Shown here: piece by piece, positions 4,537-32,903 of the stretch | How positions within the stretch are numbered: position 1 is the first letter of the stretch | Layout: the number at the start of each line of letters is the position of its first letter | Origin: Corallochytrium limacisporum Hawaii | Lineage: Eukaryota > Protista > Pluriformea | DNA: 53,538 nt | Assembly (NCBI GenBank): GCA_002811645.1 | Contig: PDIP01000106.1 | Location: 1-53,538, forward strand | Direction of reading: 5' to 3' | Position numbers and translations under genes: made by a program | Notes under the pieces: generated by a model | Databases searched by the model: none | What the model saw: only the letters and a program-made list of their open reading frames with translations | Told to the model about the DNA's origin: nothing

Positions 4537-6141
4537 ATGCGTCTCTTTGACATCTTGACATTCATCACTTGTGGTGTAGCCACTGCTCTGGCTGGTGACA
4601 ATGAGGTGAGCACCGCCAACGAGGATGGCTTCATCTGGGTAGTCCCCCAGGCACCGGAACAGATCCACGTCGGTCCCTATGACATCCAGGGCGACAATAA
4701 TAAATACGTCTTCCGGTGGGCGACTGCCCTCCCAAAACAAGTGGTTGATGGATCTGATCCCGTAAATACCTACGCTCCTGTTGTCAATATCTGGCACTAC
4801 GGTGATGTAAGCCACAACGAGGGACTTACATTCGAGGGTCGTAGCTGGCTCTTTCACGACCCTGGTAGTAAACCTGGTCACTTCAATCAGCTTTTCCATG
4901 AGGTGATCGTTGATCTGACCTTGATCGAGAATGGAGACACCCGCTACTATCGGTACATGGTTGGTGACAGACAGTTTGGATACTCCTCCATCATGATGTT
5001 GGAGACCCTGCCCCAGACCTTGCTCAATCATGAGCCCCTGAAGCTCCTCTTGTACGGCGATCTTGGGTGGGAGAACGCCGTGGCTTTGCCCCTGATCGAA
5101 GAACGTATGCGCAATGAACATTTTCACGCCGCCGTTCACATAGGTGACTTTGCTTACGACTTTGATACTGCCAACGGCACCTACGGTGACCATTTTATGC
5201 GCTCTATTCAGTCCATTGCCTCTCGCATGCCCTATTTGGTCACCATGGGTAACCATGAGGCCCCCTATGACTTCTTCCACTACTTGAACCGCTTCACCCA
5301 GCCCTATAGGGCATCCAATTCAACTTCTCCAATGTTCTGGTCGATGGACATGCCCCATGTCCACTTCGTGAGTTTCAGTTCCGAGCTGTACTACTTCACC
5401 AACGAGACGGCGGTCAGAGAACAATGGGAATGGTTGGACGCTGATCTGGCGGCCGTTAACCGCACTGATACACCCTGGGTCATTGTCATGTCTCATCGTC
5501 CCATGTACTGCTTTGCAGATGATAAACCCTGCAATGTGGACACAACCCGACTCTTGTCTGATGGTCTTATTATCGGGAACAACACTGATGGTTCTGTGGA
5601 ACGGAAGTGGGGACTAGAGGAACTAGTGCTCAAGTACGATGTAGATCTATACGTAGCCGGCCATGTGCACAGCTATGAGCGTCACTGGCCGACTCGTCGT
5701 GGCCAGGCAGTGATCACCGACGGAGTCAGTCTGCATGTCTACGAAAATCCTCAGGCACCCGTTCACTGGACTGTGGGAAACGCCGGCAATAAAGGCGGAA
5801 TCAACTTCTTTGAATCGGTAGGCAACTCCACAGCTGTTCAGTACGAGGGCTATGGATACTCTGTGGTGGAAATCACGAGGTCAAAGATACAATTCCGTCT
5901 GTACCAAGCTCCATCCAACGAACTCTTTGACTACTTCACGATTGTCAAGACCTGCAGCGATGACAACCCCTGGACTATTGCTCCCACCGGCGCTCCCTGC
6001 TGGTTTGACAATGACAGGGAGGACTGTGCTAAGTGCATAGACGGAGGCTGTCAGTGTGACAGAGATCGGCCAAATGTCTGCGTACAATGTGGAGATGACG
6101 AGGCGTGCGCAGAAGCTGCACCGTGCGAGAATTTCTTCTGA
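4537..6141 (+). CDS. Secreted purple acid phosphatase (metallophosphoesterase, ACP7/PAP-like) with a C-terminal 10-Cys module
   Basis: ATG at 4537 opens a signal-peptide-like MRLFDILTFITCGVATALAG. The five PAP metal-ligand blocks occur in order: GDLG, GDFAYD, GNHE, VMSHRPMY, GHVHSYER. The N-terminal FN3-like part has HEV...L...YYRYMVG, and the Cys-rich tail starts at ~5953. Confidence 0.93.
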   Translation: MRLFDILTFITCGVATALAGDNEVSTANEDGFIWVVPQAPEQIHVGPYDIQGDNNKYVFRWATALPKQVVDGSDPVNTYAPVVNIWHYGDVSHNEGLTFEGRSWLFHDPGSKPGHFNQLFHEVIVDLTLIENGDTRYYRYMVGDRQFGYSSIMMLETLPQTLLNHEPLKLLLYGDLGWENAVALPLIEERMRNEHFHAAVHIGDFAYDFDTANGTYGDHFMRSIQSIASRMPYLVTMGNHEAPYDFFHYLNRFTQPYRASNSTSPMFWSMDMPHVHFVSFSSELYYFTNETAVREQWEWLDADLAAVNRTDTPWVIVMSHRPMYCFADDKPCNVDTTRLLSDGLIIGNNTDGSVERKWGLEELVLKYDVDLYVAGHVHSYERHWPTRRGQAVITDGVSLHVYENPQAPVHWTVGNAGNKGGINFFESVGNSTAVQYEGYGYSVVEITRSKIQFRLYQAPSNELFDYFTIVKTCSDDNPWTIAPTGAPCWFDNDREDCAKCIDGGCQCDRDRPNVCVQCGDDEACAEAAPCENFF

Positions 6142-6418
6142 ATCGAAATCAGATGAGGGTGCCGCAGATTACGCGATTGAACAATTTGGTGTACCATGAC
6201 TTCATGTCACATGGTGGCCATGAAAATTGACATCGTGAAACAACGTTGATACAAACAATATATTTGAGGACATAGTGTCCCTTTATCCTGCACCGGAACA
6301 TATGAGAAGTGAGGGTGCACATCTTCCGATAATCGTTGGGTGGTAATTCTGTTGTGAAGCATGGTACCCTTCTGTCCTGGCTTAACTGAGTACAGGGCGT
6401 TTGTGGGCGAAAATCGAT

Positions 6419-7945
6419 TTACTTTGCCAGAATGCGCCAGCGGTTCTTGTGGCCACTAACAGGCTCCAACTTGTAGTTCTGAGCTTCAAGCTGATCCACA
6501 ACGGCTTGAGGCGCGGTGTGGCTGTCAGATGTTTGCACAGAGTTTGCGGCTGCCTGGAAGGCCATACCACTCAAGGACTTTTGTGTTTCGCATGTAGCAG
6601 GTGGTGGGAACTTTGCGGCCAATTCCTCATTGCAACTGAGATTAGGGACCTTTGAACGGTCACATTCCCACATCTCCATGAAAATGTTGTTGCCGGCGAT
6701 GGATTCCGCAAAGCCAGCCACGCTAGGAGAGACCAGGCTGTTCAGAAAAGCATCAGACCATTCAGCACCAATGACCTTCATTGCCAGTTCAGCCACATTC
6801 CTGATCGCAGCGGGGGTGGTGAGTTTGTTGTTGTAGAGAAGGTTGGGAATCTGGGAAGCGTTGCCCAGTCTGGGCCGACCGTTGCCCTGGATCCAAGCCT
6901 GGATCCCGGTAAGCTCTGGGTCATACATGATATCACCAGTGAACCAGATGTCAGCTTCAGTCTGATCCGTCCACACGGTTACATTCAGATAACTGTTTCG
7001 ACGCATCAAAGGGGACGCATCGAATGAGACCGTGCGGGACTCGGTTACCGACTGACTGGTTCCTTCAGTGGTGGACTTAGCAGCGGTTCTTTCTAGACCC
7101 ATCGACATTTTCGTAGAGATTTCCAGGCCGACACCGAGGAACTTGGTTGAGGCTTTGGCACCGATCTCAAGTCCCTTAGTTTTTTTGGTACTTTCAGAGT
7201 AAGTTTGGGAAGAGCTAGAGCCGGTTGATTCCGTGATGGTCTCAGAATAGCTGTACTGAGTAGTCACGCACTGATTCAAAGTGTTCGAATAGAAGCCTGT
7301 GTTTGGACTCGTTTGCTTGCTGCGGGTCAGCACCTCCCACACACGTGTCGTAGCGTAGTCAAAAGAAGTCTGGTTCTGATACTGATGATTGAGCGGTGCA
7401 GTCACATTCATGAAAGACGGGAAAGTGACGGCCCACGGTTTAAACCACTTCTCCTGTGCATCCTTGAAACACCGGGCCTCCATTCCTTCATTTGATGGAG
7501 TCAGGTCATGCAGAGCATACCACCACGCGTCCCAGTCAGCAGCATTCTTTTCCGTACGCTCAATCTCGTAGGGTGCCATGAGAATGGGGGCTGTGAGGGC
7601 ATTGAGTTTCCAGAGCAGAGAGTAGAAGGGATCCACGAAACCATTATAGTCAAGTATAGCAAAGTTTCCTGCCTTGTCCTCCATGTAGTCCTCAAAATCG
7701 GTGCCCTGCTGGACAACAATCTTGGCCAGGGGAGTCATGTCCGCGTGACCATGCATAATGTACTCAAACCCCCACTCACCTCTGCCCCACACCGCAGTTC
7801 TTAAGACACCTTCCCAAGCAGTAGTGTTGGCGGTGCTAATCAGGTGGGGACATTCAGCAAAGTTGGCGGGCTGGGCCGCCGGTGCGGATTCGGCAACGGT
7901 GATGCTCACAAGGAACACACAAACGGTGTGTGAGTTTAGCTTCAT
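6419..7945 (-). CDS. Secreted protein with a probable aerolysin/ETX-MTX2-like beta-pore-forming domain
   Basis: 508-aa ORF with a signal-peptide-like N-terminus (MKLNSHTVCVFLVSITVAES). The centre has Ser/Thr-rich strands around an alternating amphipathic hairpin (TKGLEIGAKASTKFLGVGLEISTKMSMGLE), followed by LNVTVW...IWFTGDIMY. The paralog at 3-443 confirms it is coding. The toxin assignment is pattern-based (~0.6). Confidence 0.75.
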   Translation of the reverse strand: MKLNSHTVCVFLVSITVAESAPAAQPANFAECPHLISTANTTAWEGVLRTAVWGRGEWGFEYIMHGHADMTPLAKIVVQQGTDFEDYMEDKAGNFAILDYNGFVDPFYSLLWKLNALTAPILMAPYEIERTEKNAADWDAWWYALHDLTPSNEGMEARCFKDAQEKWFKPWAVTFPSFMNVTAPLNHQYQNQTSFDYATTRVWEVLTRSKQTSPNTGFYSNTLNQCVTTQYSYSETITESTGSSSSQTYSESTKKTKGLEIGAKASTKFLGVGLEISTKMSMGLERTAAKSTTEGTSQSVTESRTVSFDASPLMRRNSYLNVTVWTDQTEADIWFTGDIMYDPELTGIQAWIQGNGRPRLGNASQIPNLLYNNKLTTPAAIRNVAELAMKVIGAEWSDAFLNSLVSPSVAGFAESIAGNNIFMEMWECDRSKVPNLSCNEELAAKFPPPATCETQKSLSGMAFQAAANSVQTSDSHTAPQAVVDQLEAQNYKLEPVSGHKNRWRILAK

Positions 7946-10944: not shown

Positions 10945-11937
10945 TTATGCCTCTGTGACAGTCATCACAAACTGGTTGTTGCACATGCTAGCAGTCTCAC
11001 AGTCGTTTAGTAGCTTTCCTTCTTCGGGGGTGAGAAGTCCTTCAGTCTTCAGGAAATCCATGAACCGGTCCCACACATTGCGGTCCATGTTCCCGAAAAC
11101 ACCTTCCTTGTCAAAGAAGACAGGTGCCAGAACACCCACGCTCTTCGTACAGAACTCCACAGACTCATTTTGCTTGGGCTTCTGGATTATCTCGAAGATG
11201 GCCTTGCCAGCGGCCGCGTGGTCTGTTGCAGCGGCTTTGTAACCTTTGGCAGTGGTCTGCATAAAGGTTTTGAGAACGGCTGCTTTCTTATCGTCATGGG
11301 CCACTTCCTTCAGGACGGCCAGCACAGGTGAGTAGCAATAGGGTACACCGTAATCAGCCATGCGAAAGATGTTCAGAGGCTCGTTGGTCAGAAGTCCCTC
11401 GTGAGCATCGAAGATCCAGGCAGAGTCATACTTTCCGTCCTGCATAGCTTGCCAAATGGCGAGCTTGTCTGGGCACTCGAACTTTACATCATTGGCCTCC
11501 ACATCACCGCCATCGTTCTTTATCATGCGACGGACAATGAAGTCTTCATAGCGGGCCTTGTAACTTGCATATCTGCGGCCGCAGAGATCCCTTGGCCGCT
11601 CGATTCCACTAGACCTCTTCACCGCAATGCCACTCCGGTCCTCCTGGAGCAAGGCACAAATGGCAACCAAAGGAGCCTGTTTCTTTGAAGGTTCTCGACA
11701 GTTGAAGGAGATGACAGACTCAGATGGACACACCGCGATGTGAATGTCATCCTCACTAGCATTAGAATCGGAAACGGCCTTCGCAGGAGTGACCTTAAAG
11801 TTGTCAGTCTCCGGGTCAATAAAGTCAACGTCCAAACCAGCCTCCTTGTACATGCCCTGAGCCTTAGCTAGGATCATGCCCGCATGATTAGCATTGGGAG
11901 TCCAGTCAAGGTGGACAATAACTCTGTTAACCGTCAT
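10945..11937 (-). CDS. NMT1/THI5-family (ThiY/SsuA-like periplasmic-binding-fold) protein
   Basis: Contains the N-terminal LDWTPNANHAG...A...G.Y...GLDV signature, GIERPRDLCGRRYASY, and DYGVPYCYSPVL. 330 aa with no signal peptide. Confidence 0.88.
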   Translation of the reverse strand: MTVNRVIVHLDWTPNANHAGMILAKAQGMYKEAGLDVDFIDPETDNFKVTPAKAVSDSNASEDDIHIAVCPSESVISFNCREPSKKQAPLVAICALLQEDRSGIAVKRSSGIERPRDLCGRRYASYKARYEDFIVRRMIKNDGGDVEANDVKFECPDKLAIWQAMQDGKYDSAWIFDAHEGLLTNEPLNIFRMADYGVPYCYSPVLAVLKEVAHDDKKAAVLKTFMQTTAKGYKAAATDHAAAGKAIFEIIQKPKQNESVEFCTKSVGVLAPVFFDKEGVFGNMDRNVWDRFMDFLKTEGLLTPEEGKLLNDCETASMCNNQFVMTVTEA

Positions 11938-13086: not shown

Positions 13087-14316
13087 CTACTTCCCTCCAG
13101 GGCACATGGCGTAATTCTGCTCTGAAGCGGGTAGTGGCTTATCAGCCTGCCAGGATGTGGCCTGTGCCTTCATGTAGGGGCCGACTGGTCCAGTTGTTTG
13201 CTGTGTGAATTGGCTGAAGAGCACCTGCATCTTGCCCCTGTCTTCTACGGTACAATTCCCATCTTTTTTGAGTCCGATGCAATTCAAGATATACTGAAAG
13301 TTTTCGTCCGTAGGGCACTCTTCGACTTTCTTAAGGTGGTCATCATAGCAGGTGATGTTCAAAACCTCTGGATCCTCAAATCCGCCAAAGCTGTACTGCC
13401 ACAGAGCCCATGCAAAGTCGCTCGACGCGTCGATTTCGTCCTTAGGCGGGAGCAGGATAACATTCTTTCTGTGGGGCCAGAAAATGGGGCCAACGCCTGT
13501 GAAATCTGTCAGCGCTGCTAGGTCCATGTGGTCTGTATGCAGCTCCTTGGGTATAAACTGGTTGTATTGTGCGCCGGGCTCGTAGTAGCTGGCGTGGCCT
13601 CCCAAGGCAAGGAACACAACGGGGTGTGTGCGCCAAAGGTGACAGTCCTGGCTCCGGCAGTCCATGTAGTTGGTGTAACCGTGGGCTTGAAGACTCACAC
13701 CCACGGGCTCTCTTTCATCGGGACAAACTGCCACTTGCATGTACTCCCAGTCACCCTGGTGGATGCCCACTGTGCAGATACTAACGTACTGCACCGCCTC
13801 TTTGTCGTGTTCAGTAGTGTTGTATACAACACTCTGACCAGTGCATCCATTGTATTCAAAGAAGTAGTAATAGGAGTAGACCCAAAAGCCGGCGTCGTCC
13901 TGGTACACCTGACCGTAAATCGGAGCGGTTAGTAGTTTACCAAAACGAGGGGCGTCTCCACTATAGTCATCACTCGCCTGGACAAGTTGGAAGTCTGAAT
14001 TGGTTCCATTGTTGGGATGGTCCCGGGTTATTTTGAACATTTCCTCATTGGTGGCTCGTTTCGTCGTGTTCTTGCCATCCTGGAAAATCCATGCGTCAGC
14101 CAAGAAATGTTGGACATCAGTGAGATGGTATGGTTCATCTGGGTGCTCAAAAAGAATCGGTGCGTACACCGAAAGTCTCCTCTGGGCCTCCTCCAAGGTC
14201 CATTTGCGTTTGCCGGAACATTCAAAGGGCTTGTTCTCGCCGGAATAAGTCAAGTTGGATGGGATGTATCCAATACCAGCACCGTAATTGTTTGGGGGGC
14301 ACACAGTTGCAGACAT
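13087..14316 (-). CDS. Vps62-related (DUF946 / NPP1-like fold) protein, copy 1
   Basis: Motifs YAPILFEHPDEPY, APIYG, YSYYYFFEYNG, GIHQGDWE, SLQAHG, HPVVFLALGGHASYY, W..W...FG and C-terminal TGPVGP are typical of Vps62-like proteins. A close paralog lies at 17216-18442. Confidence 0.82.
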   Translation of the reverse strand: MSATVCPPNNYGAGIGYIPSNLTYSGENKPFECSGKRKWTLEEAQRRLSVYAPILFEHPDEPYHLTDVQHFLADAWIFQDGKNTTKRATNEEMFKITRDHPNNGTNSDFQLVQASDDYSGDAPRFGKLLTAPIYGQVYQDDAGFWVYSYYYFFEYNGCTGQSVVYNTTEHDKEAVQYVSICTVGIHQGDWEYMQVAVCPDEREPVGVSLQAHGYTNYMDCRSQDCHLWRTHPVVFLALGGHASYYEPGAQYNQFIPKELHTDHMDLAALTDFTGVGPIFWPHRKNVILLPPKDEIDASSDFAWALWQYSFGGFEDPEVLNITCYDDHLKKVEECPTDENFQYILNCIGLKKDGNCTVEDRGKMQVLFSQFTQQTTGPVGPYMKAQATSWQADKPLPASEQNYAMCPGGK

Positions 14317-15289: not shown

Positions 15290-15543
15290 NNNNNNNNNNN
15301 NNNNNNNNNNNNNNNNNNNNNNNNNNNNNNNNNNNNNNNNNNNNNNNNNNNNNNNNNNNNNNNNNNNNNNNNNNNNNNNNNNNNNNNNNNNNNNNNNNNN
15401 NNNNNNNNNNNNNNNNNNNNNNNNNNNNNNNNNNNNNNNNNNNNNNNNNNNNNNNNNNNNNNNNNNNNNNNNNNNNNNNNNNNNNNNNNNNNNNNNNNNN
15501 NNNNNNNNNNNNNNNNNNNNNNNNNNNNNNNNNNNNNNNNNNN
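15290..15543. other. Assembly gap (N run)
   Basis: Run of N flanked by C-rich and poly-G tracts. Confidence 1.
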
Positions 15544-17029: not shown

Positions 17030-20000
17030 TCATTTCTAATCATCTGAAAGAAGGCCCTTTTAGATATACAAGGGGGAAATTGTTATGTTACAAGCCATCA
17101 CATCAGTGGTCGTGAAATTTCTCACAGGGTTCGGCACAGACAGCGGTGACACGGTTCGTAAAGGGGACCCTAAACATTGTAGGTAGGTGTTCGTCGTGGA
17201 GACCGGAGGGATGATCTAATTCTCTCCGGGGCACTCAGCGAAATCCTGCTCTGAACCAACTAGTGGTTTGTCTGCCTGCCAGGATGTGGCCTGTGGCTTC
17301 TCATACGGGCCAACTGGGCCTTCTGTTTGCTCTGTGAAGCTTTGGAATACTAAAAACATTTTCTGCTCATCCTCTGGGGTACAGTTCCCATCTACGAGAC
17401 CGAGGCATGACAAGATATACTGAAAGTTTGCGTCGGTAGGGCACTCTACGGCTCTCACAAGCCACTCGTCGTAGCAAGTGATGTTAAAAATCTCTGGATT
17501 CTCAAATCCGCCCCAGCTCCACTGCCACAGAAGCCATGCGAAGTCGCTCGATCCGTCAATTTCGTCCCTAGGCGGCAGCAAGATGACATTGTTTCTGTGG
17601 GGCCAGAAAACGGGGCCAAAGCCTGTGAAATCTGTTTGCGCGGCTAGGTTCATGTGGTCGGTAAACAGCTCTGGGGGTATAAACTCGTGGTACTGAGCGC
17701 CAGCCTCGTAGAAGCTGGCATGGCCTCCCATGGCAAGGAACACAGTGGGATGTGTGCCCCACATGTTGCAGTACTGGTTGCGGCAGTCCACGAAATTGGT
17801 GAAACCGTGGGCTTGTACACTCAAACCCACGGGCTGTATTTCTTCGGGACAAACTGCCACTTGCATGTACTCCCAGTCACCCTGGTGGATGCCCAGTGTG
17901 CAGATACTAACGTACTGCACCGCCTCTTCTCCATCTTCAGTAGTGTATACAACACTCTGACCAGTGCATCCATTGAATTCAAAGAAATAGTAATAGGAGT
18001 AGACCCAAAAGCCGTCCTCTTCGTACACCTGACCGTAGATCGGAGCTCTCAGTTTTTTATCGCACCCAGGGGCATCTCCACTAAAATCATCACTGGCCTG
18101 GACAAGCTGGAACTTGGAATTGTCATTCTCATCTGGATCAGGGTAGTTGATAAATATGTTGTAAATTTCTTCATTGGTGGCTCGTTTCGTTGTGTTCTTG
18201 CCATCCTGGAAAATCCATGCGTCAGCCAAGAAGTGTTGGACATCAGTCAGATGGTATTGCTCCTCTGGGTGCTCAAAAAGAATCGGTGCGTACATCGAAA
18301 GTCTCCTCTGGGCCTCCTCCAAGGTCCATTTGCGATGGCCGGAACATTCAAAGGGCTTGTTCTCGCCGGAATACGTCAAGGGGGATGGGATGAATCCGAT
18401 ACCAGCACCGACATCGTTTGCGGGGCACACAGTAGCAGACATGTTGATGTTATGCTTGTAAACTAATGGAGTTCTTATGACACTAATGCTTGGTAGAGGA
18501 ATATATGCTTGCGTTGTACATGATTGCTGGTCAGGTTGACATGAAGGATCCGAATCCCAGGCATCCCTTAAATACCGAGCAACGTGATGACGAATCAAAC
18601 TCTTTCCATGTCAGATACACACTTCCGCCTTTACAAAACCAACCTGTGTGCTTAATGCGAGTATAACACACTCCGTGAACCGACTATTGCTACAGCCACA
18701 GTGGAACGATGGCCATAACGATTTTGCTATTTACACAGGATAGTGACCCAAATCATCCACCGGGGCGTCCAGGTTTCCTATTGCCACGCATTGATTTTCT
18801 CCTTCTCCAGTTTCTGTTTGTTCTATCTTCTGCAGCTGCACTACTTATTTTGCTATGGCGCAATACCCGCAATGCGGACACCTTTCCCCAGAACCTCTAC
18901 ACAGTCCAAGGCTCCCAAGGAGATCTACCATCACATTCAAACCACAACGTCCGGGAAAGGTAAGGAATACACCCAGGATAGAAGTTTCTTCTGGAATCGA
19001 ACACAAGACGAGATTTCAGAACCAGTCACTAATGGCTTCTCTTATCATACCGATCATGCTTCTACACACTGGACGAGTTGCTGTGCATGGCCAGTCTCCG
19101 TGTAAAGAGTCACTCCACGGCTTCGCCTTGGAAGTTGATCGAGTACCCTCCCTGCCCGTGGAGATGTGGGGGTTCCCCCTCCCTCCCTCCTGTCGGGTCC
19201 GCTGGCTGCGTTACTAACATTAAGGGACCGGCCTGTGTGCCACTAACACCCTTGCCCGCGCCCTCTCTTAACGGGTCCGGGCAGTCCAGCCACTACTGCG
19301 GCGAAGGGGCTTTGTTGCGGGGAAGGGGGATGGACAAGCACACATGGTGTTTAATATAGTGACCACCGAAAGGGACTTCATGCAGTTGGGGACTGAGATG
19401 ACTGGTGTATCGCCTCTCAATTACCAGTTTCAGCAGTGTTCTACTCCTACAATCCTCTGTGCAAACTCTATCGTCACACACCTAATACATTTTCTTCGCT
19501 GATGTTTCCATCACTCGAATGTTTCACACACACCCCCGCCCCCGGGGGTTTCATTTCCACAGCGACCCCGGAGGGCACAGGTGCGCATTTCGCGGGGTTC
19601 AAACTTCCTTGCGTTGGTCATGGGTCTGGGTTGTTACCAATGTTTGCCACTTAGCAGGAGCATTTTGTGTCCGCGCTGTGTACAATGCTCCTTTGCGGTT
19701 GATGAGCAATTGGCCGTCAACCATCAGTACAAGTACTATCTATTAAAAAGCCGTGGAGTTCCTAAGATTCCGGACTGACTTTCCGGTTTCGATTCCGATG
19801 GCTTCTGACCTTTAGAAAATTCTTGGGGAAAATATTTTCCATCACCTTTAACACTGGACAAGTAGGCAGTCTCTGAAGCCCCCCCCCCTCCCGGGTGGGG
19901 GTGTGTGTTTCGACCGTGCAAAACTATTAAAAGAAAATGTCCTTTGTTTCTTCGGGAATTGTGGGTTTGAGCCCCGTTACTAACAATATGCGGTCGCTGA

Positions 20001-20785: not shown

Positions 20786-23347
20786 TCACATTAAATTCGC
20801 AATCGCTGCACAGTTTCCGAACTGGAAAATGTGGTCGTCGCACACCTCGTCAATCAGGTCGCACGGTACGCACACGCGCCCGCCAAGCGGACCAAAAGCA
20901 TCGCCACCGCACTGGCATGAGCCGGGGGTACACTGTCCACACTCCTTGGATGACTGATTCTCCTCACAGCGCGCTCCCGTGTTCGCTAACGTGAACTCGT
21001 TCAGGCACTCGTATGGTTTCCGATTCCGCAGTGGTGGGGATGGAGGAACCCGGGCTGGTTTTCGGTTGCCCACTTCTGCAGTTGGCAGAGTTGCGGATGA
21101 CTCTGGTTGGACTGTCAACGACAGATCGTATGCGGAGCACGGCAAGGGTTTAAGTACCTCAGTATCTCCCATACACTCTCTGAAGTTCCTGTGCTCGACT
21201 TCGCACAAGTCCGTGTCACCACATGGTACGCACACAGCGCCCTCGTGCGGATTTTCTTTACATCCGCATTGACAGGTCCCAGGTGACGCGCACTGAGCGC
21301 ACGACCTGTCGCTCGTATTGAACCAGCAGGCTGCGCCGGTATGGGAAGCTGTATACTCGTTCAGGCATTCCTCAGGATCCTTCGTGGCGGTTGGCTCCTG
21401 CGTTGAACTTGTTGGTACCTCAATGGGCACTTCAGTACCAAACGTCACCGTCCCACTGCCTGGTACACTGATCCACGTGTACCTTCCTTCGTTAGTCACT
21501 GTCGCACTGCTACCTCCCGTCTGCTGAGGTACAGAGTTGAGTCCTTCAAAGGCAATGGAACATTCTCCGTCAGTCGTTATTTCGATGAAGTTCGGCGCCC
21601 CAGTGGATCCGTGGGCACGCTGCACGTAGATGTGTGGATCGCACTCCGCGTATCCAGCGCGAAGGTTGAACAGCTCAGCAATGCGGTCCTGGCCTTCGCT
21701 GATAACCGGGATTGTCATGTACTCGCTGGCCCCGCCAACCACGTACTCGATCCACAGGGACAGGAGCGCATGCTTATCATTTTGGTAATCCTGCTTAATC
21801 ATGTTAGCCTGGTGGAACATATAGGGGTCGTGACGTAAGGCCAGCAGTTGAGCAACATGACGATTAGTCTCAGCCTCCATCAGTTCTTCGATTGTTTCCC
21901 ATGACCAGTACGCCAAATTCTGCTCAAATGTCGCGGCGTCCCAGGCGACCGCCGTGCAGTGTCGAGGTACAATCCAGAGTGCCTTCTTTGCATCGTATCC
22001 ATTAGTTTCATGGTTTACGAAGTAGGGCAGGTAGTTTGCGCGCGTCCAACTGGACCAGCTGTGCACGCTGTCACAGCTGTTAGATATGGCACTTGTCATA
22101 CCAAGTGCTTCCATTGAGACAAAGAGCTCACCGTTGTGCAAACCAGAGTATCCTCCAGTGATGAGGCCTTTAGGCATCCAGTTCTTGTGATCAGCCAAAC
22201 CGAGCACCTCCTCGCCGATCTTGATGTTGTATCCCAGTTCGGCCACACGTATATCGTTAGGGCCTAGCGCACCCATTCTTGCGTGTGTGGTAGTGTGCGA
22301 CATCCACAGGAAGGTGTCCTTCCAGCCGTTATTTTCTCGGAGCTCCGCAGCCAATACACTATGAGGATCAGTGCGTTCCAGCCAGGGCTCCCAGAAAGAA
22401 GAATCCTTCCACCAGTCCTCGTCCCATAAACTGTCATAGAAGTCTTTACGCGTTCCTGCCTCAGAGTAGTCATGTGCTCCACCCTTGTACGAGCCAAAGT
22501 GGGCTGGTAGAGTGCCCTCGAATTTCAGACCGAGACCGTTGAAAGCCATCTCGGGTCTGATCAAGGATCCGTGTTGGGCGTTAAAAGCAGCAAGCCAATC
22601 TACCCACCAATCCATGTCCTGCTTAGTAAGGGCACGATCCGGGGCGTGACCAGGTGGAGCGAAGACATCGTCGACTTGTAGACCAGCTAACATGCGTCGA
22701 TGGCCTTGCAACGGAATATCTGTGCCGGAACCTGCGAGCAGAAATTGAAGGCCAACGTGTTGCAGTGCCAGAGACGCGAGATCATAGTCATTTAACCTGC
22801 TGGCAATGTGTAATGTGTCACCGTCTGCAAATGCAGCCACTCTCCCAGAGCCATCTCTGACGATTGTGGATCCAACAGAGCCGGTCGAGGAGAATACATC
22901 GAGATTGAAATTTCGCCGAGACCACTGGCTACCCCGACGGACAACGTCTTGGAGGAAGTCAGTATTGCCATTGGAAGGGACACTTAGGGAGTCAGAGCTT
23001 GAACGGGTACGGGATGCCGTGCCAAAGACATTGGAGTTCATGACAACATGTCTGACACCAAAATTGGCCTGGTAGTTGCGAATGTTCTCGGAGTCGTTGA
23101 CGGATGCGCCGTCCACTGTGATTATGCAGCTGTACAGTCCGCGGTCTCCATCGCCGAGCGGGACCGTGTCCGGATTGTTGGTTCTGAACACGGTGTATGG
23201 CATTCCCGCTCCAAAGAGGGCCACAAGTCCGTCAGGGTTCGAACCGGAGCTTGGTGCAAACACTGCACACCCCAGTTTTACCGATGGGAGAGTCTGTGCC
23301 ATAGCGGCACATACCAAATACAAAAGGATCAGCTTGATCAACATCAT
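20786..23347 (-). CDS. agd3: Secreted Agd3-like (CE18) polysaccharide deacetylase with two C-terminal 10-Cys modules, copy 1
   Basis: Signal peptide MMLIKLILLYLVCAAMAQ (ATG 23347). YQANFGVRHVV, QVDDVF, MAFNG, WMSHTTTH, SGLHNG, IVPR and LLALRHDPYMFHQAN match the recalled Aspergillus Agd3 motif set. S/T/P linkers lead to two Cys-rich repeats. Confidence 0.88.
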   Translation of the reverse strand: MMLIKLILLYLVCAAMAQTLPSVKLGCAVFAPSSGSNPDGLVALFGAGMPYTVFRTNNPDTVPLGDGDRGLYSCIITVDGASVNDSENIRNYQANFGVRHVVMNSNVFGTASRTRSSSDSLSVPSNGNTDFLQDVVRRGSQWSRRNFNLDVFSSTGSVGSTIVRDGSGRVAAFADGDTLHIASRLNDYDLASLALQHVGLQFLLAGSGTDIPLQGHRRMLAGLQVDDVFAPPGHAPDRALTKQDMDWWVDWLAAFNAQHGSLIRPEMAFNGLGLKFEGTLPAHFGSYKGGAHDYSEAGTRKDFYDSLWDEDWWKDSSFWEPWLERTDPHSVLAAELRENNGWKDTFLWMSHTTTHARMGALGPNDIRVAELGYNIKIGEEVLGLADHKNWMPKGLITGGYSGLHNGELFVSMEALGMTSAISNSCDSVHSWSSWTRANYLPYFVNHETNGYDAKKALWIVPRHCTAVAWDAATFEQNLAYWSWETIEELMEAETNRHVAQLLALRHDPYMFHQANMIKQDYQNDKHALLSLWIEYVVGGASEYMTIPVISEGQDRIAELFNLRAGYAECDPHIYVQRAHGSTGAPNFIEITTDGECSIAFEGLNSVPQQTGGSSATVTNEGRYTWISVPGSGTVTFGTEVPIEVPTSSTQEPTATKDPEECLNEYTASHTGAACWFNTSDRSCAQCASPGTCQCGCKENPHEGAVCVPCGDTDLCEVEHRNFRECMGDTEVLKPLPCSAYDLSLTVQPESSATLPTAEVGNRKPARVPPSPPLRNRKPYECLNEFTLANTGARCEENQSSKECGQCTPGSCQCGGDAFGPLGGRVCVPCDLIDEVCDDHIFQFGNCAAIANLM

Positions 23348-25856: not shown

Positions 25857-28430
25857 TCACTGAATGTTCTCGATACTCCTGCAGGACTGGAAGTGATGGA
25901 CATAGTCGGGGCACAGTTCTTCTCTCCGGTCGCATGGTACACACACCCGACCACTTTGGAGGCTAGGACCATGACCACTGCACTGACATGAGCCGGGAAT
26001 GCACTGTGCACAGTCAGTTGATGACGCATTGTCCTCGCAAAGGGTCCCTGTATTTGCGGTGGTGAAGTCATTCAAGCAAACACCTGGGCTTAGGGTGGGT
26101 GCCGGTCGGTTTGGGGGCGGCCGCATTGGGTACCGGGAGCCAGTTGACGTCGTCGGTTGTGTTGGAGGGGATGTCGGCGAGAGCTCATACGGGGAGTTTT
26201 GCAATGGTTCTTCGTTTTCCACTACTTCTGACCCCTTGCACTTCTGCCATTTCTTGTATTCAGTGGCGCACGCAGCGCTGTCGTTGCATAAAACACACAC
26301 GTGTCCCCACTCCTTCTCGTTCGAATTGCCACATTGACAGCCACCTCTACTGCAGCTCGCACACGACCTATCGGAGGTGTCCCACCAGCACGCCGATCCT
26401 GAATCAGAGAGAGTATACTTGTTCAGGCATCCACCAGTCGGAGTGGTGGGCTTTGCTGTTGACGTAGTCGACGTGCTAGTAGTTGAACTCGTTGGTACAT
26501 GCACGGGCACTTCCGTACCAAACTTTACTGTGCCACCACTGGCCAACTGAATCCATGTGTAGCTTCCTTCCTTGGTCACGTCCGCTTTGTTACCCTCCGT
26601 CTGATTTGGCACCGCGTCAAGGATCTCAAAGGCAATCGAACAAGCCTGCTTAGTTGTGATTTCAATGTAGTTCGGTGACGCAGAGGATCCGTTGGCCCGC
26701 TGTACATAAATCTCCGGATTGCATGACCAGTATCCAGCACGGCGATGAAACAGATCGGAGAGGATGTTCATTCCCACGCTTTCCATGGGAATTGCCAAGA
26801 ACTCGCTCACCGTCCCCAAAACATAGTCGATCCACATCGACGTGAGCGTTAGTGTTTTGCCCTTGTATTCCGTTTGAACCATGTTGGCCTGGTGGAACAT
26901 GTGTGGATCATGCCGCAGTGCCATAATCTTGGGACACTGATAGTCAATCTCGGCTTCCAAGAGTTCCTCGATGGTGTCAAAGGGATAGTAAGAGAGATTC
27001 TTTTTGATTGTGGCCGCATCCCAGCCCATTCGTGTGCACTCTCGGGGCACAACCCAGAGGTTCTTTTCGGTGTTATTGTAGCCATTGTTCTTGAAGTCAA
27101 CAAAATGCGGCTGGTAGTTGTTGCGTGACCAGACGGACCAATTGTCCGTCGATTCGCAGTTGCTGGAGATTGCAGTGTGCATGCCAAGCTTATCCATGGC
27201 AGCGTAAAAGTCGCCGTTCTCCAGGGCAGAGTACATGCCAGTGATAACGCTGTTGCGGCTCCAATTCGGATGATTTGTCAGGTTCAGGACCTCCTCTCCG
27301 ACCGCCATGTTGTACTGCAGTTCGACTTGGCAGTCGCCAGGGCCGATTTCTCCCATGTTTGCATGTGTCATGGTGTGTGACAACCAAAAGAAGCCGTCCT
27401 TCCAACTATCGCTTTCTCGGAGCTCCGCTGCCACCTCGCTTACGGTGCCTGTGCCATTCAACCACGGACTCCAGAAACTGCGGTCGTTCCACCATTCATT
27501 CTTCCACAAGCGAGTGTACATGTTTTTACGGGATCCTGCCGGAGAGTATACGCCGTGCGGACCAAAATCGTAGTGTCCAAAGTACTCTGGATCAGCGGAG
27601 CCGGCAAGGGGCAGGCCGTTAAAACAGATCTCTTGCTTGATAGAAGACCCGTGCTGGTCGTTGAAGTCATCCATCCATTTCAACCACCAATTAAGGTCAT
27701 CCTTAGTAATAATAACATCCTGGGCATTGTCGGGAGGATTAAAGAAATCGTCCACTTGAAGATTAGCCATAACGCGTCGATGGCCCTGCAAAGGAATATC
27801 TGTGCCGGTACCTGTCAACAGAAACTGCAGACCGATGTGTTGCAGCGCTAAGGATGCAAGATCATAGTCAGTGAGCTGGTTGGCGATGTGCAGTGTGTCA
27901 TTGTCAGCGAAAGCAGCCACGGCGCCAGCGCCGTCCGTGACAATCGTCACTGTAGATCCGGATGGCATCTTAGAGAACACGTTTAGCTTAAATTTTCGCT
28001 GAGACCACTGGTTTCCCCGGCGGACTACGCCTTCTAGGAAGTCGGTATCGCCATTTGAAGGGACGCTTAGGGAGTCAGAGCTTGAAGAGGTTCGGGATGC
28101 TGTACCAAAGACGTTAGAGTTCATTACAATGTGTCTGACGCCAAACTCCTCCTGGTAGTTGCGAAGGTTCTGCGAGTCGTGGACGGATGACCCATCAATA
28201 GTGATGAGGCAGCTGTACAGTCCGCGGTCTCCATCGATGAGCTGGACCGTGTCCGGGTTGTCCGTTTTGAACACTGTGTATGGCAAACCGGCCCCCAACG
28301 TGACGATGAGACCTTCAGGGGTTGAATCGGAGGTTGATGAAAACACAGCGCACCCCAACTTGACTGGCGGTAGAGTTTGCGCCAGTACGGCACCGAACAG
28401 GGTCAAAGGGATCAGTTTGATCAAGAACAT
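25857..28430 (-). CDS. agd3: Secreted Agd3-like (CE18) polysaccharide deacetylase with two C-terminal 10-Cys modules, copy 2
   Basis: Signal peptide MFLIKLIPLTLFGAVLAQ; motifs QVDDFF, WLSHTMTH, VVPR, MALRHDPHMFHQAN; same architecture as copy 1. Confidence 0.88.
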   Translation of the reverse strand: MFLIKLIPLTLFGAVLAQTLPPVKLGCAVFSSTSDSTPEGLIVTLGAGLPYTVFKTDNPDTVQLIDGDRGLYSCLITIDGSSVHDSQNLRNYQEEFGVRHIVMNSNVFGTASRTSSSSDSLSVPSNGDTDFLEGVVRRGNQWSQRKFKLNVFSKMPSGSTVTIVTDGAGAVAAFADNDTLHIANQLTDYDLASLALQHIGLQFLLTGTGTDIPLQGHRRVMANLQVDDFFNPPDNAQDVIITKDDLNWWLKWMDDFNDQHGSSIKQEICFNGLPLAGSADPEYFGHYDFGPHGVYSPAGSRKNMYTRLWKNEWWNDRSFWSPWLNGTGTVSEVAAELRESDSWKDGFFWLSHTMTHANMGEIGPGDCQVELQYNMAVGEEVLNLTNHPNWSRNSVITGMYSALENGDFYAAMDKLGMHTAISSNCESTDNWSVWSRNNYQPHFVDFKNNGYNNTEKNLWVVPRECTRMGWDAATIKKNLSYYPFDTIEELLEAEIDYQCPKIMALRHDPHMFHQANMVQTEYKGKTLTLTSMWIDYVLGTVSEFLAIPMESVGMNILSDLFHRRAGYWSCNPEIYVQRANGSSASPNYIEITTKQACSIAFEILDAVPNQTEGNKADVTKEGSYTWIQLASGGTVKFGTEVPVHVPTSSTTSTSTTSTAKPTTPTGGCLNKYTLSDSGSACWWDTSDRSCASCSRGGCQCGNSNEKEWGHVCVLCNDSAACATEYKKWQKCKGSEVVENEEPLQNSPYELSPTSPPTQPTTSTGSRYPMRPPPNRPAPTLSPGVCLNDFTTANTGTLCEDNASSTDCAQCIPGSCQCSGHGPSLQSGRVCVPCDRREELCPDYVHHFQSCRSIENIQ

Positions 28431-28925
28431 GGTGGACGATCTGTGCGATTGATTGCTGGCTACGTCCTGGCTTTAGTGCTAGTTTGCTAGTGTCGCCAAT
28501 TCAATCCACCAGCCGATCACTGCAGAATCCAAACTGACCCTTTAAATAGTTACTGCCTGATGTACGATGTGCCAACGATGGGTACTCCTGCTCGATCCTC
28601 TCCGTCTCTTCACGGCTGGCTCCCAGTGGTGAACCGGTGCGGGAAGGAGGCGGGTTGCAATCATCACCAACCCCCTTCTCCGAAGACAGGTCCCAGGGAA
28701 AGGTACAGGGGAATAGGTCGTGGGCGGAAGATCATCTGCGCACTGGAGCTTACCGGAACGGGCAAGAAAATGAGCCAAAACGATCAATCTCGATGGATTG
28801 CTGTTGATCACAATGCCCAGAGCGGCTACGCTTCTGCAGGTGGTTGGGTATCCCGCCAGGGTTTTTTGGGGATCCGTGTTTCGCCGCTGGTGGCGTGGGG
28901 GACAGCAGCCTCAATTCCTCTCCAC

Positions 28926-28970
28926 AATCGGTGGCAGTCAATTTTCCCTAATCGGTGGCAGTCAATTTTC
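28926..28970. repeat. Perfect 21-bp direct repeat (AATCGGTGGCAGTCAATTTTC x2, period 24)
   Basis: Copies at 28926-28946 and 28950-28970, about 500 bp upstream of agd3-like copy 2. Confidence 0.9.
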
Positions 28971-29038
28971 GTTAAGCACGGTGTGGGCGGGGCGTCGTGC
29001 TCAGCTTGGGTAGGGAGGGAAAGAAAGGGGGAGGGGGG

Positions 29039-29041
<3 letters not shown>

Positions 29042-29074
<33 letters not shown>

Positions 29075-29218
29075 GAGAGAGAGAGAGCGAAAGAGAGAGG
29101 GAGAAAGAGAGAGAGCGAAAGAGAGAGGGAGAGAGAAAGAGAGAGGGAAGAAAGAGAGAGAGCGAAAGAGAGAGGGAGAAAGAGAGAGAGCGAAAGAGAG
29201 AGAGAGAGAGAAAGAGAG
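29042..29218. repeat. (AG)n-rich compound microsatellite with a higher-order GAGAGAGCGAAAGAGAGA unit
   Basis: Near-pure purine tract; the GAGAGAGCGAAAGAGAGA core recurs four times. Confidence 0.95.
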
Positions 29219-30239
29219 GTGGTCGGGCTCGCTATGGTAGCACTTTCGATTTGGGGGTGGAGTCGCGACATTACCGTCTGAAGACTGCTCACGAGAGCCC
29301 GTGCCCAAACTGAGCAAAGCGAGGACCGGAGGAAAGTGTACGGACCCCCCAAAAAAACCCCCCCAACGACAACAAAATTTGAATAAGAAAAAGAGAGTGA
29401 TGGCTCATGTTTTCACCAACAATGGAGCCAGGACGTGAGGGGCAGGCCCTGGCCTTTTCCTGGCGCACACAATGCTGAATGTTGTGCTATGCCATCCGAT
29501 TTGCGGTCGGAGGAGAAGGCGGGCGGGCCGCGGGATAATATCGCGGCGTTCAATACTTAGTACACCGGGATTTTTGTTAGCCCAGGCCTCTGATGTTTGG
29601 CGGTGGTCGCATATACCCGCACATCGAGACCAGCAGCAGGGCCAACATCCGAAACAACCAAGGAACAGGGAGTAAAAAGGAGGTGGTGTAGTCACAACGG
29701 GCCATGCGTGTCAAAGTGATAGATGTACTGTGTACCATGGGGGCAAATTACCGATGGAAGATGAGATTGTGATGAGTTGCACATGACGAAGTCCTGAAAA
29801 GTCTAAATTACTCGGTTCCGAATAAACCTGTCTACTTGTACAGACGCTATGGAAATGACGGGTACCGATGGCTGATACACTCATTCTTGGTCAGTTCGTT
29901 AGGGGATCAAGTGTGGTTCCCTCGGAGCGGATGGCTGGTGGAGCACTGTCTGTGCCGTACGTACCTTGCGCACAATATGGAAACGGGCGCGCAATGAAAA
30001 AAACGAAGGTACGATGGTACAGCTGAGGTCTCAAGGCCTTGCGAAAGGGGGCCGCTATCCTCGGATCGTGGAATTTGTTGTGGTGTGTGATCCGCTGCTA
30101 TGCAGAGAACCATAGAATTAAAAAAAAAACCAATGGTAAGACAAATGGTGGTACAATGGTAACTGAGGTTCGTGTGTAATGTGGTTCAAAATGCTGGGCT
30201 GGCGGAGAGTCCCAGCCTCTTCGCACCAATTGGCACTCT

Positions 30240-32903
30240 TCATACAATATTCAGCAGATAGGCACAATGCTGGAACCCTTCGACGTGGTCCGGGCAGAGG
30301 TCATGAGTAAGATCGCATGGCACACACACACGGCCACCGAGCCCACTAAAACCGACATCATCACACTGGCATGAGTTCGGTTTGCACTGTCCACAATCCA
30401 TTGAGGAAGCATCACCCTCGCAGCGGGCACCTGTGTTAACCGTAGTCCATTCGTTCAGGCACGCGTGCGGTTTTGTTGTTGGTTTCGGGCGACTTGGGGG
30501 CATCCGTGGTGGTTGGCTGTGGCCTGTCTCTGTGTTCGGCACCGAGGTAAACGATGCTGAAGCCGTTGATGACGTTGACAGGGTTGGCATGTGGGACGAC
30601 GGCGACGACACTTGTCTTTCGGTTTCTGCGCCACCTTGCGCCTTGCACTCCAGCCACTTGAGGTATTCCACTTCGCACTCAAGCCCATGGGTGTCGCACT
30701 CCACACACACGCGTCCGAGATGTGGCGCCTTGTCCCAACCACATTGGCAACCTCTGGACTCTTCGCCCTCAGAGCAGGACGCGCACGAGAGGTCATTCGC
30801 GTCCCACCAGCATTCTGCACCTGAATCAGATACCGTCCACTTGTTTTCACACACTGGATCTGGTACTGGTGTGGTCGGTGTCGCCGTCGGGGTGCTAGTT
30901 GTTGTAATTGTAGGACCCTCTACGGGCACTTCCGTGCCGAAGGTCACAGTTCCCTTACTGGACACCTCGATCCACGTGTAGCCCGCCTCGGTGCTTACCT
31001 TTGCATCCTTGCCTGACGTTTGTTCCGGCACAGAGCCAAGAGCCTCGAAAGGAATCGAGCACGGACCTTCCGTCTTGATTTCGATATAGTTCGGCGCTTC
31101 CGAGGACTCATGGGTACGCTGCACATAGATTTTCGGATTGCACTCGGCGTATTCAGCACGAAGGTCGAATAGTTCAGCGATGCGGTCCTGGCCCTCGCTC
31201 ACAATGGGAATGGCCAAGTAATCGCTTACACCCCCAACCACGTATTCGATCCACAGCGACATGAGCGAATGTGTACCCTTCTTATACTTCTGTACGAACA
31301 TATTTGCCTGGTGGAACATGAAGGGATCGTGCCGCAGGGCCATCAATGAGGATCCCGCACGTTCGAGCTCTTCCTCCATCACTCTTTCAGTGGTGTATTC
31401 ATCATTAGGATCGTATTTTTCCAAATTTTGATCCCAAGTGGCAGCGTCCCAGCTGCACGCAGTGCAATGCCGTGGTACAACCCAGATTCGACGCTGAGCA
31501 TCATAACCATTGTGTTCAATGTCAACGTAAAACGGCAGATAGTTCTCGCGGGTCCATGTGCTGAAGTCGTGAGCGGGATGGCAGCTGTCAGATAGCACAC
31601 TGTTCATCCCCAGGTTATCCATTGCAACGTAGAAGTCGCCGGAGAGCAGACCAGAGTACATGCCAGTGATCACGCCATTGGGGCTCCAGTTTGAATGCCC
31701 AGCCAGGTTCAGTACCACCTCCGCGAACCCGATGCTGTACTGAAGTTCAACTTCGCTGTCGGCTGGGCCGATAGCCCCCATGTCTGCATGGGTCATGGTG
31801 TGTGACAACCAGAGGAAGGCATCCCGCCACACTGAATTTTCTCGGATTTCTACGGCGATTGTCGCATAGTCGTCATCGCCCTCTATCCAGTCTTTCCAGA
31901 ATTCAAAATCGTTCCACCAATGGTCCTGCCACAGTTCGGTGTACGTGTCCTCCTTTTCTCCTGCCAAAGAGTAGTCGTACTGCTGTCCAAAGTCATAGTC
32001 ACCAAAGTACATGGGATCGTTGTAGCCCTTGAGGGTGAGACCGAGGCCGTTGAAGCAAAGTTCGGGTCTGATGTTGGATCCGTGCTTCTCATTGAAGTCA
32101 TTCAACCACTCCACCCACCAATGCAAATCTGAAGTACCAATCCTACGGTCCATATTCTCGTACGGCGGAGCAAACAAGTCATCAACTTGTGCACCGGCCA
32201 GGACGCGGCGGTGCCCCTGCAACGGAAGGTTTGCCCCTTGCCCCTTCAGGAGGAACTGCAGGCCAACATGTTGAAGCGCTAACGACGCCAGGTGCCTATC
32301 ATTCAGTGCACTCGCATAGTGGAGCGTATCGCCTTCGGCGAAGGCAACTGTCTTTCCATCGCCATCCACAACAATCTGGACCATGTGTTCACCGAAACTG
32401 GTCTCTTCTGTGTCGAAGAAATCAAGCCGAAACTTTCGCAGAGGCCAGCTGCTACCGCGGCGTACAATGCCGTTGAGGAAGTCGGTGTCACCTTCCAAGG
32501 GAACCTTTACAGTCTCAGAGTTAGTTCTGATCGTGGATAGCGTCCCAAAGTTGTCAGAGTTTAAGATAACGTGCCTGACGCCGAAGTGCTCCTGGTAGTC
32601 GCGAAGGTTCTGTGAATGGCTGACATCCCTGCCGTCGATGGTAATCAGACAGCTGTACAGACCCCGGGATCCATCAGTGAGCTGGACAGTGTCCGGATTG
32701 TCCGTCTCGAAAACTGTGAATGGCAAACCCGCCCCAAAGGCAACAACAAGGCCTTGAGGGTTTGAACCAGACTTTGGTGAGAATACTGCACATCCCAATC
32801 TCACTGGCGGTAGCTGCTCTGCCGTCAAGGCAGTGGCAAGACCCAACAAGATTACTCCGATCAACAACATTTCCAGCGATCGTTGCACTTCCTTCCGAGC
32901 CAT
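30240..32903 (-). CDS. agd3: Secreted Agd3-like (CE18) polysaccharide deacetylase with two C-terminal 10-Cys modules, copy 3
   Basis: Hydrophobic leader MLLIGVILLGLATALTA (alternative ATG at 32870); motifs QVDDLF, WLSHTMTH, VVPR, LMALRHDPFMFHQAN; same architecture as copies 1 and 2. Confidence 0.88.
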   Translation of the reverse strand: MARKEVQRSLEMLLIGVILLGLATALTAEQLPPVRLGCAVFSPKSGSNPQGLVVAFGAGLPFTVFETDNPDTVQLTDGSRGLYSCLITIDGRDVSHSQNLRDYQEHFGVRHVILNSDNFGTLSTIRTNSETVKVPLEGDTDFLNGIVRRGSSWPLRKFRLDFFDTEETSFGEHMVQIVVDGDGKTVAFAEGDTLHYASALNDRHLASLALQHVGLQFLLKGQGANLPLQGHRRVLAGAQVDDLFAPPYENMDRRIGTSDLHWWVEWLNDFNEKHGSNIRPELCFNGLGLTLKGYNDPMYFGDYDFGQQYDYSLAGEKEDTYTELWQDHWWNDFEFWKDWIEGDDDYATIAVEIRENSVWRDAFLWLSHTMTHADMGAIGPADSEVELQYSIGFAEVVLNLAGHSNWSPNGVITGMYSGLLSGDFYVAMDNLGMNSVLSDSCHPAHDFSTWTRENYLPFYVDIEHNGYDAQRRIWVVPRHCTACSWDAATWDQNLEKYDPNDEYTTERVMEEELERAGSSLMALRHDPFMFHQANMFVQKYKKGTHSLMSLWIEYVVGGVSDYLAIPIVSEGQDRIAELFDLRAEYAECNPKIYVQRTHESSEAPNYIEIKTEGPCSIPFEALGSVPEQTSGKDAKVSTEAGYTWIEVSSKGTVTFGTEVPVEGPTITTTSTPTATPTTPVPDPVCENKWTVSDSGAECWWDANDLSCASCSEGEESRGCQCGWDKAPHLGRVCVECDTHGLECEVEYLKWLECKAQGGAETERQVSSPSSHMPTLSTSSTASASFTSVPNTETGHSQPPRMPPSRPKPTTKPHACLNEWTTVNTGARCEGDASSMDCGQCKPNSCQCDDVGFSGLGGRVCVPCDLTHDLCPDHVEGFQHCAYLLNIV

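Follow-up and report, generated by a model that had tools for sequence, protein, structure and literature searches.

A cysteine-rich extracellular module on secreted enzymes of Corallochytrium limacisporum and in invertebrate animal proteins, with a possible role in matrix or glycan retention

Why should a purple acid phosphatase and three deacetylases of the Agd3 type carry the same small cysteine-rich segment at their C-terminal ends? The question is raised by a stretch of 53,538 nucleotides from Corallochytrium limacisporum Hawaii (NCBI GenBank assembly GCA_002811645.1, contig PDIP01000106.1, positions 1 to 53,538 of the forward strand), called the window below. A first-pass annotation, made from the letters alone, had described seven copies of a ten-cysteine module in these four proteins and proposed a mobile five-disulfide domain that binds carbohydrate or anchors its hosts to a common wall, matrix or scaffold. 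From the computational analysis reported here, the module is best read as a disulfide-rich extracellular domain of approximately 55-65 residues that folds on its own, and we put at about one half the probability that it is a new domain for binding to, or retention on, some component of the matrix or wall of the cell itself.

The four host genes are long stop-free open reading frames (ORFs), all intronless, each of which opens with a hydrophobic signal-like leader. When the earlier consensus was run as a regular expression on the translated ORFs, exactly seven matches were returned, and the annotated copies were all recovered in intact frames (aa, amino acids; Cys, cysteine):

4537..6141, plus strand: purple acid phosphatase gene, 534 aa and a stop codon; signal-like leader, Metallophos, Metallophos_C and one C-terminal module without a linker
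5953..6126, plus strand: phosphatase module copy 1, from first to last Cys; 58 aa, 10 Cys, aromatic CWFD type
20786..23347, minus strand: deacetylase D1, 853 aa and a stop codon; signal, CBM87-like N-terminal region, Agd3_CE, beta-rich region, linker, module, linker, module
21173..21367, minus strand: D1 module repeat 1; CWFN type, 11 Cys
20810..21007, minus strand: D1 module repeat 2; acidic CEEN type, 10 Cys
25857..28430, minus strand: deacetylase D2, 857 aa and a stop codon; identical to database protein P0001
26238..26429, minus strand: D2 module repeat 1; CWWD type
25881..26078, minus strand: D2 module repeat 2; acidic CEDN type
30240..32903, minus strand: deacetylase D3, 887 aa and a stop codon; Agd3_CE host
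30645..30851, minus strand: D3 module repeat 1; CWWD type, with a four-residue insert ahead of the fifth Cys
30264..30461, minus strand: D3 module repeat 2; acidic CEGD type

D1, D2 and D3 scored 136, 100.5 and 131 bits against the Agd3_CE (CE18) Pfam profile (gathering cut-off 27.6), and the phosphatase scored 55.8 bits for Metallophos (cut-off 21.5) and 25.2 bits for Metallophos_C (cut-off 23); on these profile scores D1-D3 are classed as CE18/Agd3-type deacetylases and the window phosphatase as a purple acid phosphatase. The C-terminal 60-200 residues of the four window proteins carry no Pfam assignment. The translations of D1, D2 and D3 have Ser/Thr/Pro linkers ahead of their modules, as had been described, and the proposed division into two subtypes likewise holds, the phosphatase copy and the first repeats reading CWFD, CWFN or CWWD and the second repeats CEEN, CEDN or CEGD. 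The ten-Cys pattern stood in six of the seven copies, but D1 repeat 1 has 11, and the core of the family consists of eight. The eleventh, unpaired Cys of this repeat, in the string QCGC, occurs in no other window copy.

Alignment of the seven window copies gave 16 invariant columns, all 10 Cys among them. A six-frame search of the 24-Mb assembly with the seven-copy profile returned 48 module matches in 23 ORFs of the Corallochytrium genome, with 41 further copies beyond the window and expectation values (E) down to 2e-20. Because the profile recovers these 41 copies as well as foreign proteins, the consensus match is not due to chance. With 23 host ORFs here and the invertebrate animal proteins described below, the module extends beyond the phosphatase and the three deacetylases of the window and beyond this organism. 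Across the 48 genome copies the eight-Cys core follows the consensus N-x-[WYF]-T-x3-[TS]-G-x2-C2-[WY]-[FWY]-D-x4-D-C3-A-x-C4-x2-G-G-C5-Q-C6-G-x5-7-V-C7-V-x-C8-G-x3-5-C9, in which the eight Cys are invariant, T is present in 48 of 48 copies, and N and G in 47 of 48 each. The residue ahead of T is aromatic in every copy (48/48), and the two residues after C2 are aromatic in 43/48 and 38/48, respectively; strong conservation extends to D, A, GG, Q, G, V and V.

The Cys outside this core come in pairs. C1 and C10 are both present in 44 of the 48 Corallochytrium copies and both missing in three, the one other copy being cut by a contig end, and C1 and/or C10 are missing from most of the foreign copies that could be parsed. 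Many foreign copies, together with three Corallochytrium copies (in a GH114 protein on contig C176), show a GCxC ... CACC pattern, whose two extra, animal-type Cys strictly co-occur: 34 copies have both, 58 have neither and none is mixed. The eight-Cys core stands alone in about ten copies. Since the extra Cys are gained and lost strictly in pairs, disulfides are expected rather than free thiols or zinc ligands. Read from Cys co-occurrence, and not from structure coordinates, the module appears to hold four core disulfides and one of two alternative fifth bridges, with the C1-C10 pair probably stapling the two module ends in Corallochytrium and a local GCxC ... CACC pair used instead in animals. 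The proposal of five disulfides is therefore kept in part, as a fifth pair does exist, but the Cys patterns indicate that it is optional and takes two alternative forms.

The module was compared with known domains at the level of sequence and of predicted fold. With Pfam-A (models to 2025), no family covers it in the four window proteins, the 19 other host ORFs or the 71 library matches described below, and the isolated modules, scanned at E up to 10, drew only FYVE_2 (E 2.9) and CSRNP_N (E 1.8), far below threshold. The same hmmscan search of isolated modules gave no match to hevein/CBM18, CBM14, CBM1, WSC, EGF, ShK, CBM10/fungal dockerin, PSI, TNFR_c6 or furin-like domains, which bears out the earlier statement that the spacing does not fit EGF, CBM1, CBM14, hevein/CBM18, WSC, ShK or fungal dockerin; in the animal proteins, EGF-type matches fall outside the modules. 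The 48-copy profile found no sequence in the whole of the PDB at E up to 10.

An AlphaFold2 model of the phosphatase copy, built with the 48-copy alignment, is compact and mostly beta, with a predicted local distance difference test score (pLDDT) of 82.7 and a predicted template modelling score (pTM) of 0.65. Foldseek of this model against the PDB gave a best E of 8.2, the best (not significant) row being a TNFR-family receptor, and VIA-align against 48,161 chains gave no Z of 2 or more. A shape search of the ESM Atlas reached at best a template modelling score (TM) of 0.44, to archaeal proteins without relation, and a sequence-feature search was likewise without a usable match. As small knots align poorly, the module is here called unassigned and not a new fold. 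The module family is thus described by no library searched (Pfam, PDB and ESM Atlas; CDD, SMART, PROSITE and newer InterPro lay outside the comparison), and these domain, AlphaFold and Foldseek searches agree with the original view of a discrete, mobile extracellular module that sits without assignment on unrelated secreted enzymes. A reading as a PSI domain, suggested by the likeness of the stretch C-x8-C-x2-C-x4-C-x-C to the beginning of such a domain, was dropped, with no Pfam PSI match and no fold match to solved PSI structures. Literature searches returned nothing linking Corallochytrium with galactosaminogalactan (GAG); cell wall combined with deacetylase gave unrelated papers, and the motif strings gave noise.

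The module also occurs outside Corallochytrium. A HMMER search of 1.84 billion representative proteins with the seven-copy profile (E up to 1e-3) matched only 71, at least seven of which are Corallochytrium's own. The remaining matches are eukaryotic and comprise marine metatranscriptome and MMETSP records as well as named animal proteins. An uncharacterised Branchiostoma protein combines Fz, three modules, Ig and trypsin; a Ciona savignyi protein, named only for its thyroglobulin type-1 repeat, has that repeat flanked by two modules; and VWDE-like proteins of Lingula anatina run through D8C, Ig, VWD and EGF before ending in two modules. Further foreign architectures are discoidin followed by two modules, a Spherulin4 (Sph3-like, GH135-like) domain with two degenerate modules in a plankton or protist protein, and P0003, a protein that consists of five modules and nothing else. 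P0107 (MMETSP0150, labelled Chaetoceros debilis) begins with two modules, is PelA-hydrolase-like and shares 64% identity with a Corallochytrium protein; coming from a diatom-labelled transcriptome, it may derive from a related culture contaminant or be a real diatom gene. Profile-profile comparison of the 48 Corallochytrium copies with 20 animal and plankton copies gave a probability of 99.6% (E 2.6e-24), by which the Corallochytrium-type and animal-type modules are judged to be one family. Many small plankton or animal-like proteins known from metatranscriptome fragments (P0014, P0016, P0022, P0027, P0029, P0035 and others), some of them with EGF, carry a divergent variant in two units. This variant reads CWWD ... 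DCAxCK ... QCG-x-P-x-H, then GCPGIPN-x-x-YTLST-x-GYPCYWD ... CAWC, is without the fifth core Cys and may be a sister family.

Within the Corallochytrium genome, the 48 copies in 23 ORFs put the module on many secreted hydrolases with no Pfam match over the module itself, as the first-pass annotation had anticipated. Arrays reach four copies per ORF, spaced by low-complexity linkers. The hosts are:

Agd3_CE deacetylases: 9 ORFs, one truncated (by Pfam)
GH114 proteins: 4 ORFs (by Pfam)
purple acid phosphatases: 2 ORFs (by Pfam)
proteins with a 555-residue domain without Pfam match: 3 ORFs (model matches the PelA hydrolase domain)
paralogs with a weak CBM87-like N-terminus: 2 ORFs (BLASTP E 2e-5; Pfam E 0.017, below threshold)
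proteins with no family assigned: 3 ORFs

The 555-residue domain (L037:6409-9042 (+), L046:1141-3711 (-) and L047:199-2277 (-); proteins P0004, P0108 and P0109) owes its identity to folding and Foldseek, as hhalign of the P0004-like domain against GH114 gave a probability of 31% and the Pfam scores stayed below threshold. Folded with 16 homologs (pLDDT 78.4), it found as its best Foldseek match the PelA hydrolase domain 5tcb (E 1.5e-12, TM by target 0.71), followed by GH191 alpha-galactosaminidases and then by GH114 enzymes including Aspergillus Ega3. A beta-rich C-terminal part follows this domain, and metagenome homologs occur at 30-37% identity. PDB sequence searches with the host domains lacking a Pfam match, including the P0002 N-terminal domain and the 1316-aa protein on contig C99, found nothing, and Spherulin4 was not found in the genome by a search run without a positive control.

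The host set is non-random, being dominated by CE18, GH114 and PelA-hydrolase-like enzymes, and the module is present on 9 of the 18 CE18 ORFs and 4 of the 6 GH114 ORFs of the genome. Agd3, Ega3 and PelA act on alpha-1,4-linked polymers of N-acetylgalactosamine and galactosamine (GalNAc/GalN) (PMC7229062; PDB titles). At least 16 of the 23 hosts belong to families that act, where studied in fungi and bacteria, on such polymers, namely galactosaminogalactan and Pel. The 18 Agd3_CE ORFs lie in a holozoan genome, on contigs including C178, C277, C283, C247, C46, C72, C264 and C88 (loci L049-L057) in addition to the module-bearing copies, and the CE18/Agd3 family has been reported so far from fungi and bacteria (PMC7229062). 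A GH114 paralog without a module, L058 (G000:C207, 584 aa), has a long Thr/Glu-rich repeat instead, as well as a D-x-D-x-D-G motif, rich in Asp and of the calcium-binding kind (resembling thrombospondin type 3 when judged by eye), ahead of its beta-rich end.

In a tree of the copies, drawn from a short alignment with many unresolved forks, tandem copies within a gene are usually nearest relatives. The second repeats of D1-D3 and that of the paralog on contig C31 form a clade with 100/100 support on a long stem, and the two phosphatase copies pair at 99/99. One clade (support 88/83) mixes copies from GH114, PelA-hydrolase-like and CE18 hosts. The sequence relationships indicate that the module has been shuffled among secreted enzymes.

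Identity between D1, D2, D3 and the paralog on C31 is 48-58% in the modules, 53-63% in the catalytic part and 11-50% in the linkers. The modules are thus about as conserved as the catalytic domains whereas the linkers are not, which argues that the modules are under selection. A further line of evidence comes from the C-terminus, where most of the difference between the CE18 paralogs lies. In the CE18 and GH114 paralogs that lack the module, this end was read by eye: in the position of the modules, four have a hydrophobic segment with a basic tail, three have a short hydrophobic C-terminus of the type that signals a glycosylphosphatidylinositol (GPI) anchor, and the remaining ones end in basic or low-complexity tails. 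In the closest D1-D3 paralog, on contig C72, the enzyme part is 53-63% identical and the linker position is the same, and a GPI-like end replaces the two modules. Circumstantial support for a carbohydrate-binding-module function is accordingly drawn from the host enzyme families, the swap with membrane anchors in paralogs and the conserved aromatics.

Expression data touch the locus at one gene. No sequencing run recorded as RNA contains the window stretch. In two small runs under the same species label (5201 letters), which look like transcriptome assemblies, a contig of approximately 2.77 kb covers the 3' end of D3 only; from a start about 65 nucleotides beyond the stop codon of D3, it extends across both modules and on into the enzyme part. 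Nothing in these two runs covers D2 except cross-matching of the D3 contig. This weakly suggests that D3 is transcribed and says nothing on D1, D2 or the phosphatase.

If the module is a retention domain for the cell's own matrix or wall, its ligand would most likely be a GalNAc/GalN-rich polymer, bound via the conserved aromatic patch. Binding would keep the deacetylases and hydrolases at the cell surface, concentrated on their substrate, and the phosphatase would be held there by its own module, so that the module would do the job of the transmembrane or GPI-like tail of the sister paralogs. In D1-D3 the second repeats, being acidic, may have a preference for the deacetylated, cationic product, a speculation from three residues. 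A GT4 (Glycos_transf_1) domain at G000:C268:142815-143264 (-) lies within a giant ORF of 3414 aa, and another at G000:C181:141083-141592 (-) within one of 3125 aa; these two ORFs are a possible source of the polymer. A bolder version, which we hold as tentative and consider doubtful as it stands, is that the module founds a new binding family specific for alpha-1,4-GalNAc/GalN within a large, hitherto unrecognised GAG-like matrix system of a unicellular relative of animals (18 CE18, at least 10 GH114/PelA-hydrolase-like genes and the giant GT4 proteins), the same ancient domain having been kept in invertebrate matrix proteins.

Several points weigh against retention on a glycan. The ligand is assigned solely because of the host enzyme families, whose substrates in Corallochytrium are taken by analogy. 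The phosphatase hosts do not act on polysaccharides, and the Agd3-like hosts already possess a CBM87-like region, so that a second binding module is not obviously needed. The two GH114 hosts with a putative type II membrane topology, in which the modules follow the membrane segment, would also fit a stalk. Neither Foldseek nor VIA-align against the PDB showed the module model to resemble a known carbohydrate-binding fold. Finally, we know of no GAG- or Pel-type polymer in the animal contexts of the module, i.e. the VWD/EGF, Fz-Ig-trypsin, discoidin and thyroglobulin-repeat mosaics.

The evidence does not separate glycan binding from protein docking. As a docking or adhesion module, which we regard as rather unlikely, it would let tagged enzymes assemble on a scaffold or a surface receptor, or would serve as a general matrix-interaction domain used for enzyme display. 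The animal copies sit among EGF, VWD, Ig, Fz and thyroglobulin type-1 domains, all classic protein-interaction modules; the module is fused to functionally unrelated enzymes, phosphatases included; tandem copies stand at protein ends behind flexible linkers in the fashion of dockerins; and the module-only protein P0003 exists. However, no candidate receptor or cohesin-like repeat protein was identified, Pfam showed no similarity to dockerin or CBM10, the hosts are skewed to one class of polysaccharide enzymes and not spread over the secretome, and conserved exposed aromatics are more typical of sugar binding.

Two further explanations do without a binding partner of this kind. The module could bind no ligand itself and act as a spacer or stability element, rigid and resistant to proteases, which keeps catalytic domains off the membrane or wall or stabilises proteins in sea water. 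Small disulfide-rich repeats are frequent stalks of animal surface proteins, and two proteins of the GH114 class, whose sequences suggest by eye a type II membrane topology, have their modules between the membrane segment and the catalytic domain; the arrays of up to four copies with low-complexity linkers would suit such a role as well. We nevertheless find a spacer distinctly improbable, since surface positions other than Cys (the N, the T with the aromatic ahead of it, the aromatic pair, D and Q) are strongly conserved in the 48 copies and between protist and animal, which a passive spacer would not need, the second repeats form a distinct conserved acidic subtype, and the single copy fused directly to the phosphatase C-terminus gains no spacing. 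A zinc cluster, in which CxxC ... CxC ... CxxC would form a Zn(Cys)4 knuckle in place of disulfides, was set aside and seems very improbable indeed. C3-A-x-C4 and C7-V-x-C8 are classic CxxC pairs, and the only marginal Pfam matches are to a FYVE-type zinc finger and a Cys/Ser-rich family, but these matches (E about 2-3) are far under any threshold, all hosts have signal-like leaders and are extracellular in type, the Cys count is even, and the optional Cys covary strictly in pairs.

Among known systems, the proposed function is that of CBM87, which in Aspergillus fumigatus Agd3 binds galactosaminogalactan and raises activity (PMC7229062). Both are accessory aromatic-bearing domains on Agd3-type deacetylases, but CBM87, with its alpha/beta/alpha architecture, spans about 220 residues, precedes the catalytic domain and packs on it, whereas the module is a 55-65-residue disulfide knot that is C-terminal, flexibly linked and in tandem, occurs in addition to the CBM87-like region and has no sequence relation to it. 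In being short, Cys-stabilised and aromatic-displaying, and in occurring in one or several copies on secreted glycan-active enzymes via Ser/Thr/Pro linkers, it resembles hevein/CBM18, CBM14, CBM1 and WSC domains, from which it differs in Cys number and spacing and to which it has no profile match. PSI and TNFR/furin-type repeats are likewise eight-Cys extracellular modules of about 50 residues in animal mosaic proteins, yet PSI, TNFR and furin-like families found no Pfam match in the 71 proteins or the isolated modules, and there was no structural match to solved PSI, TNFR or EGF domains. Dockerins, on which the earlier idea of an anchoring tag was modelled, are like the module in being short, terminal and often duplicated and in marking a wide variety of enzymes that a single organism secretes. 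Bacterial dockerins are calcium-binding EF-hand-like repeats without disulfides, and fungal dockerins have about 40 residues with 4-6 Cys; no sequence match to the module and no cohesin-like partner were found. By kind, then, the module is an appended Cys-rich extracellular binding module, and it is a member of no family compared here.

The remainder of the window bears on the module genes only by position. An assembly gap interrupts it:

15290..15543, no strand: assembly gap (run of N), intergenic and not part of the feature

The gap sits between Vps62-like ORFs at 13087-14316 (-) and 17216-18598 (-) and overlaps no module or host gene. As it separates the phosphatase from the deacetylase array, only their physical linkage is affected, and no conclusion rests on that linkage. 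A long G run directly after the gap suggests that it may sit in a low-complexity region. The intergenic DNA between D2 and D3 (window 28000-30000) has a strong GC skew of 0.19 and a strong AT skew of 0.14, with a stretch around 29027-29223 flagged as a repeat. In the species-labelled runs a second contig, of about 1.2 kb, touches window positions 29224-29291.

The module picks out a coherent group of 23 secreted proteins whose probable task is to remodel an extracellular matrix, so far uncharacterised, in Corallochytrium, an organism used for studies of animal origins. It also shows that a domain found in matrix proteins of amphioxus, Ciona and brachiopods is either older than animals or shared with their unicellular relatives. 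If the module does bind GalNAc/GalN polymers, it would be the basis of a new CAZy-type family that binds galactosaminogalactan and Pel, which are adhesive biofilm polymers of Aspergillus and Pseudomonas, as well as a compact new tool for them, and if the reading as a family specific for these polymers is true, the wall and biofilm chemistry of a protist would be linked to animal matrix modules. Should the ligand be another one, the family still has clear sequence rules and a confident model, and annotation can make direct use of it.

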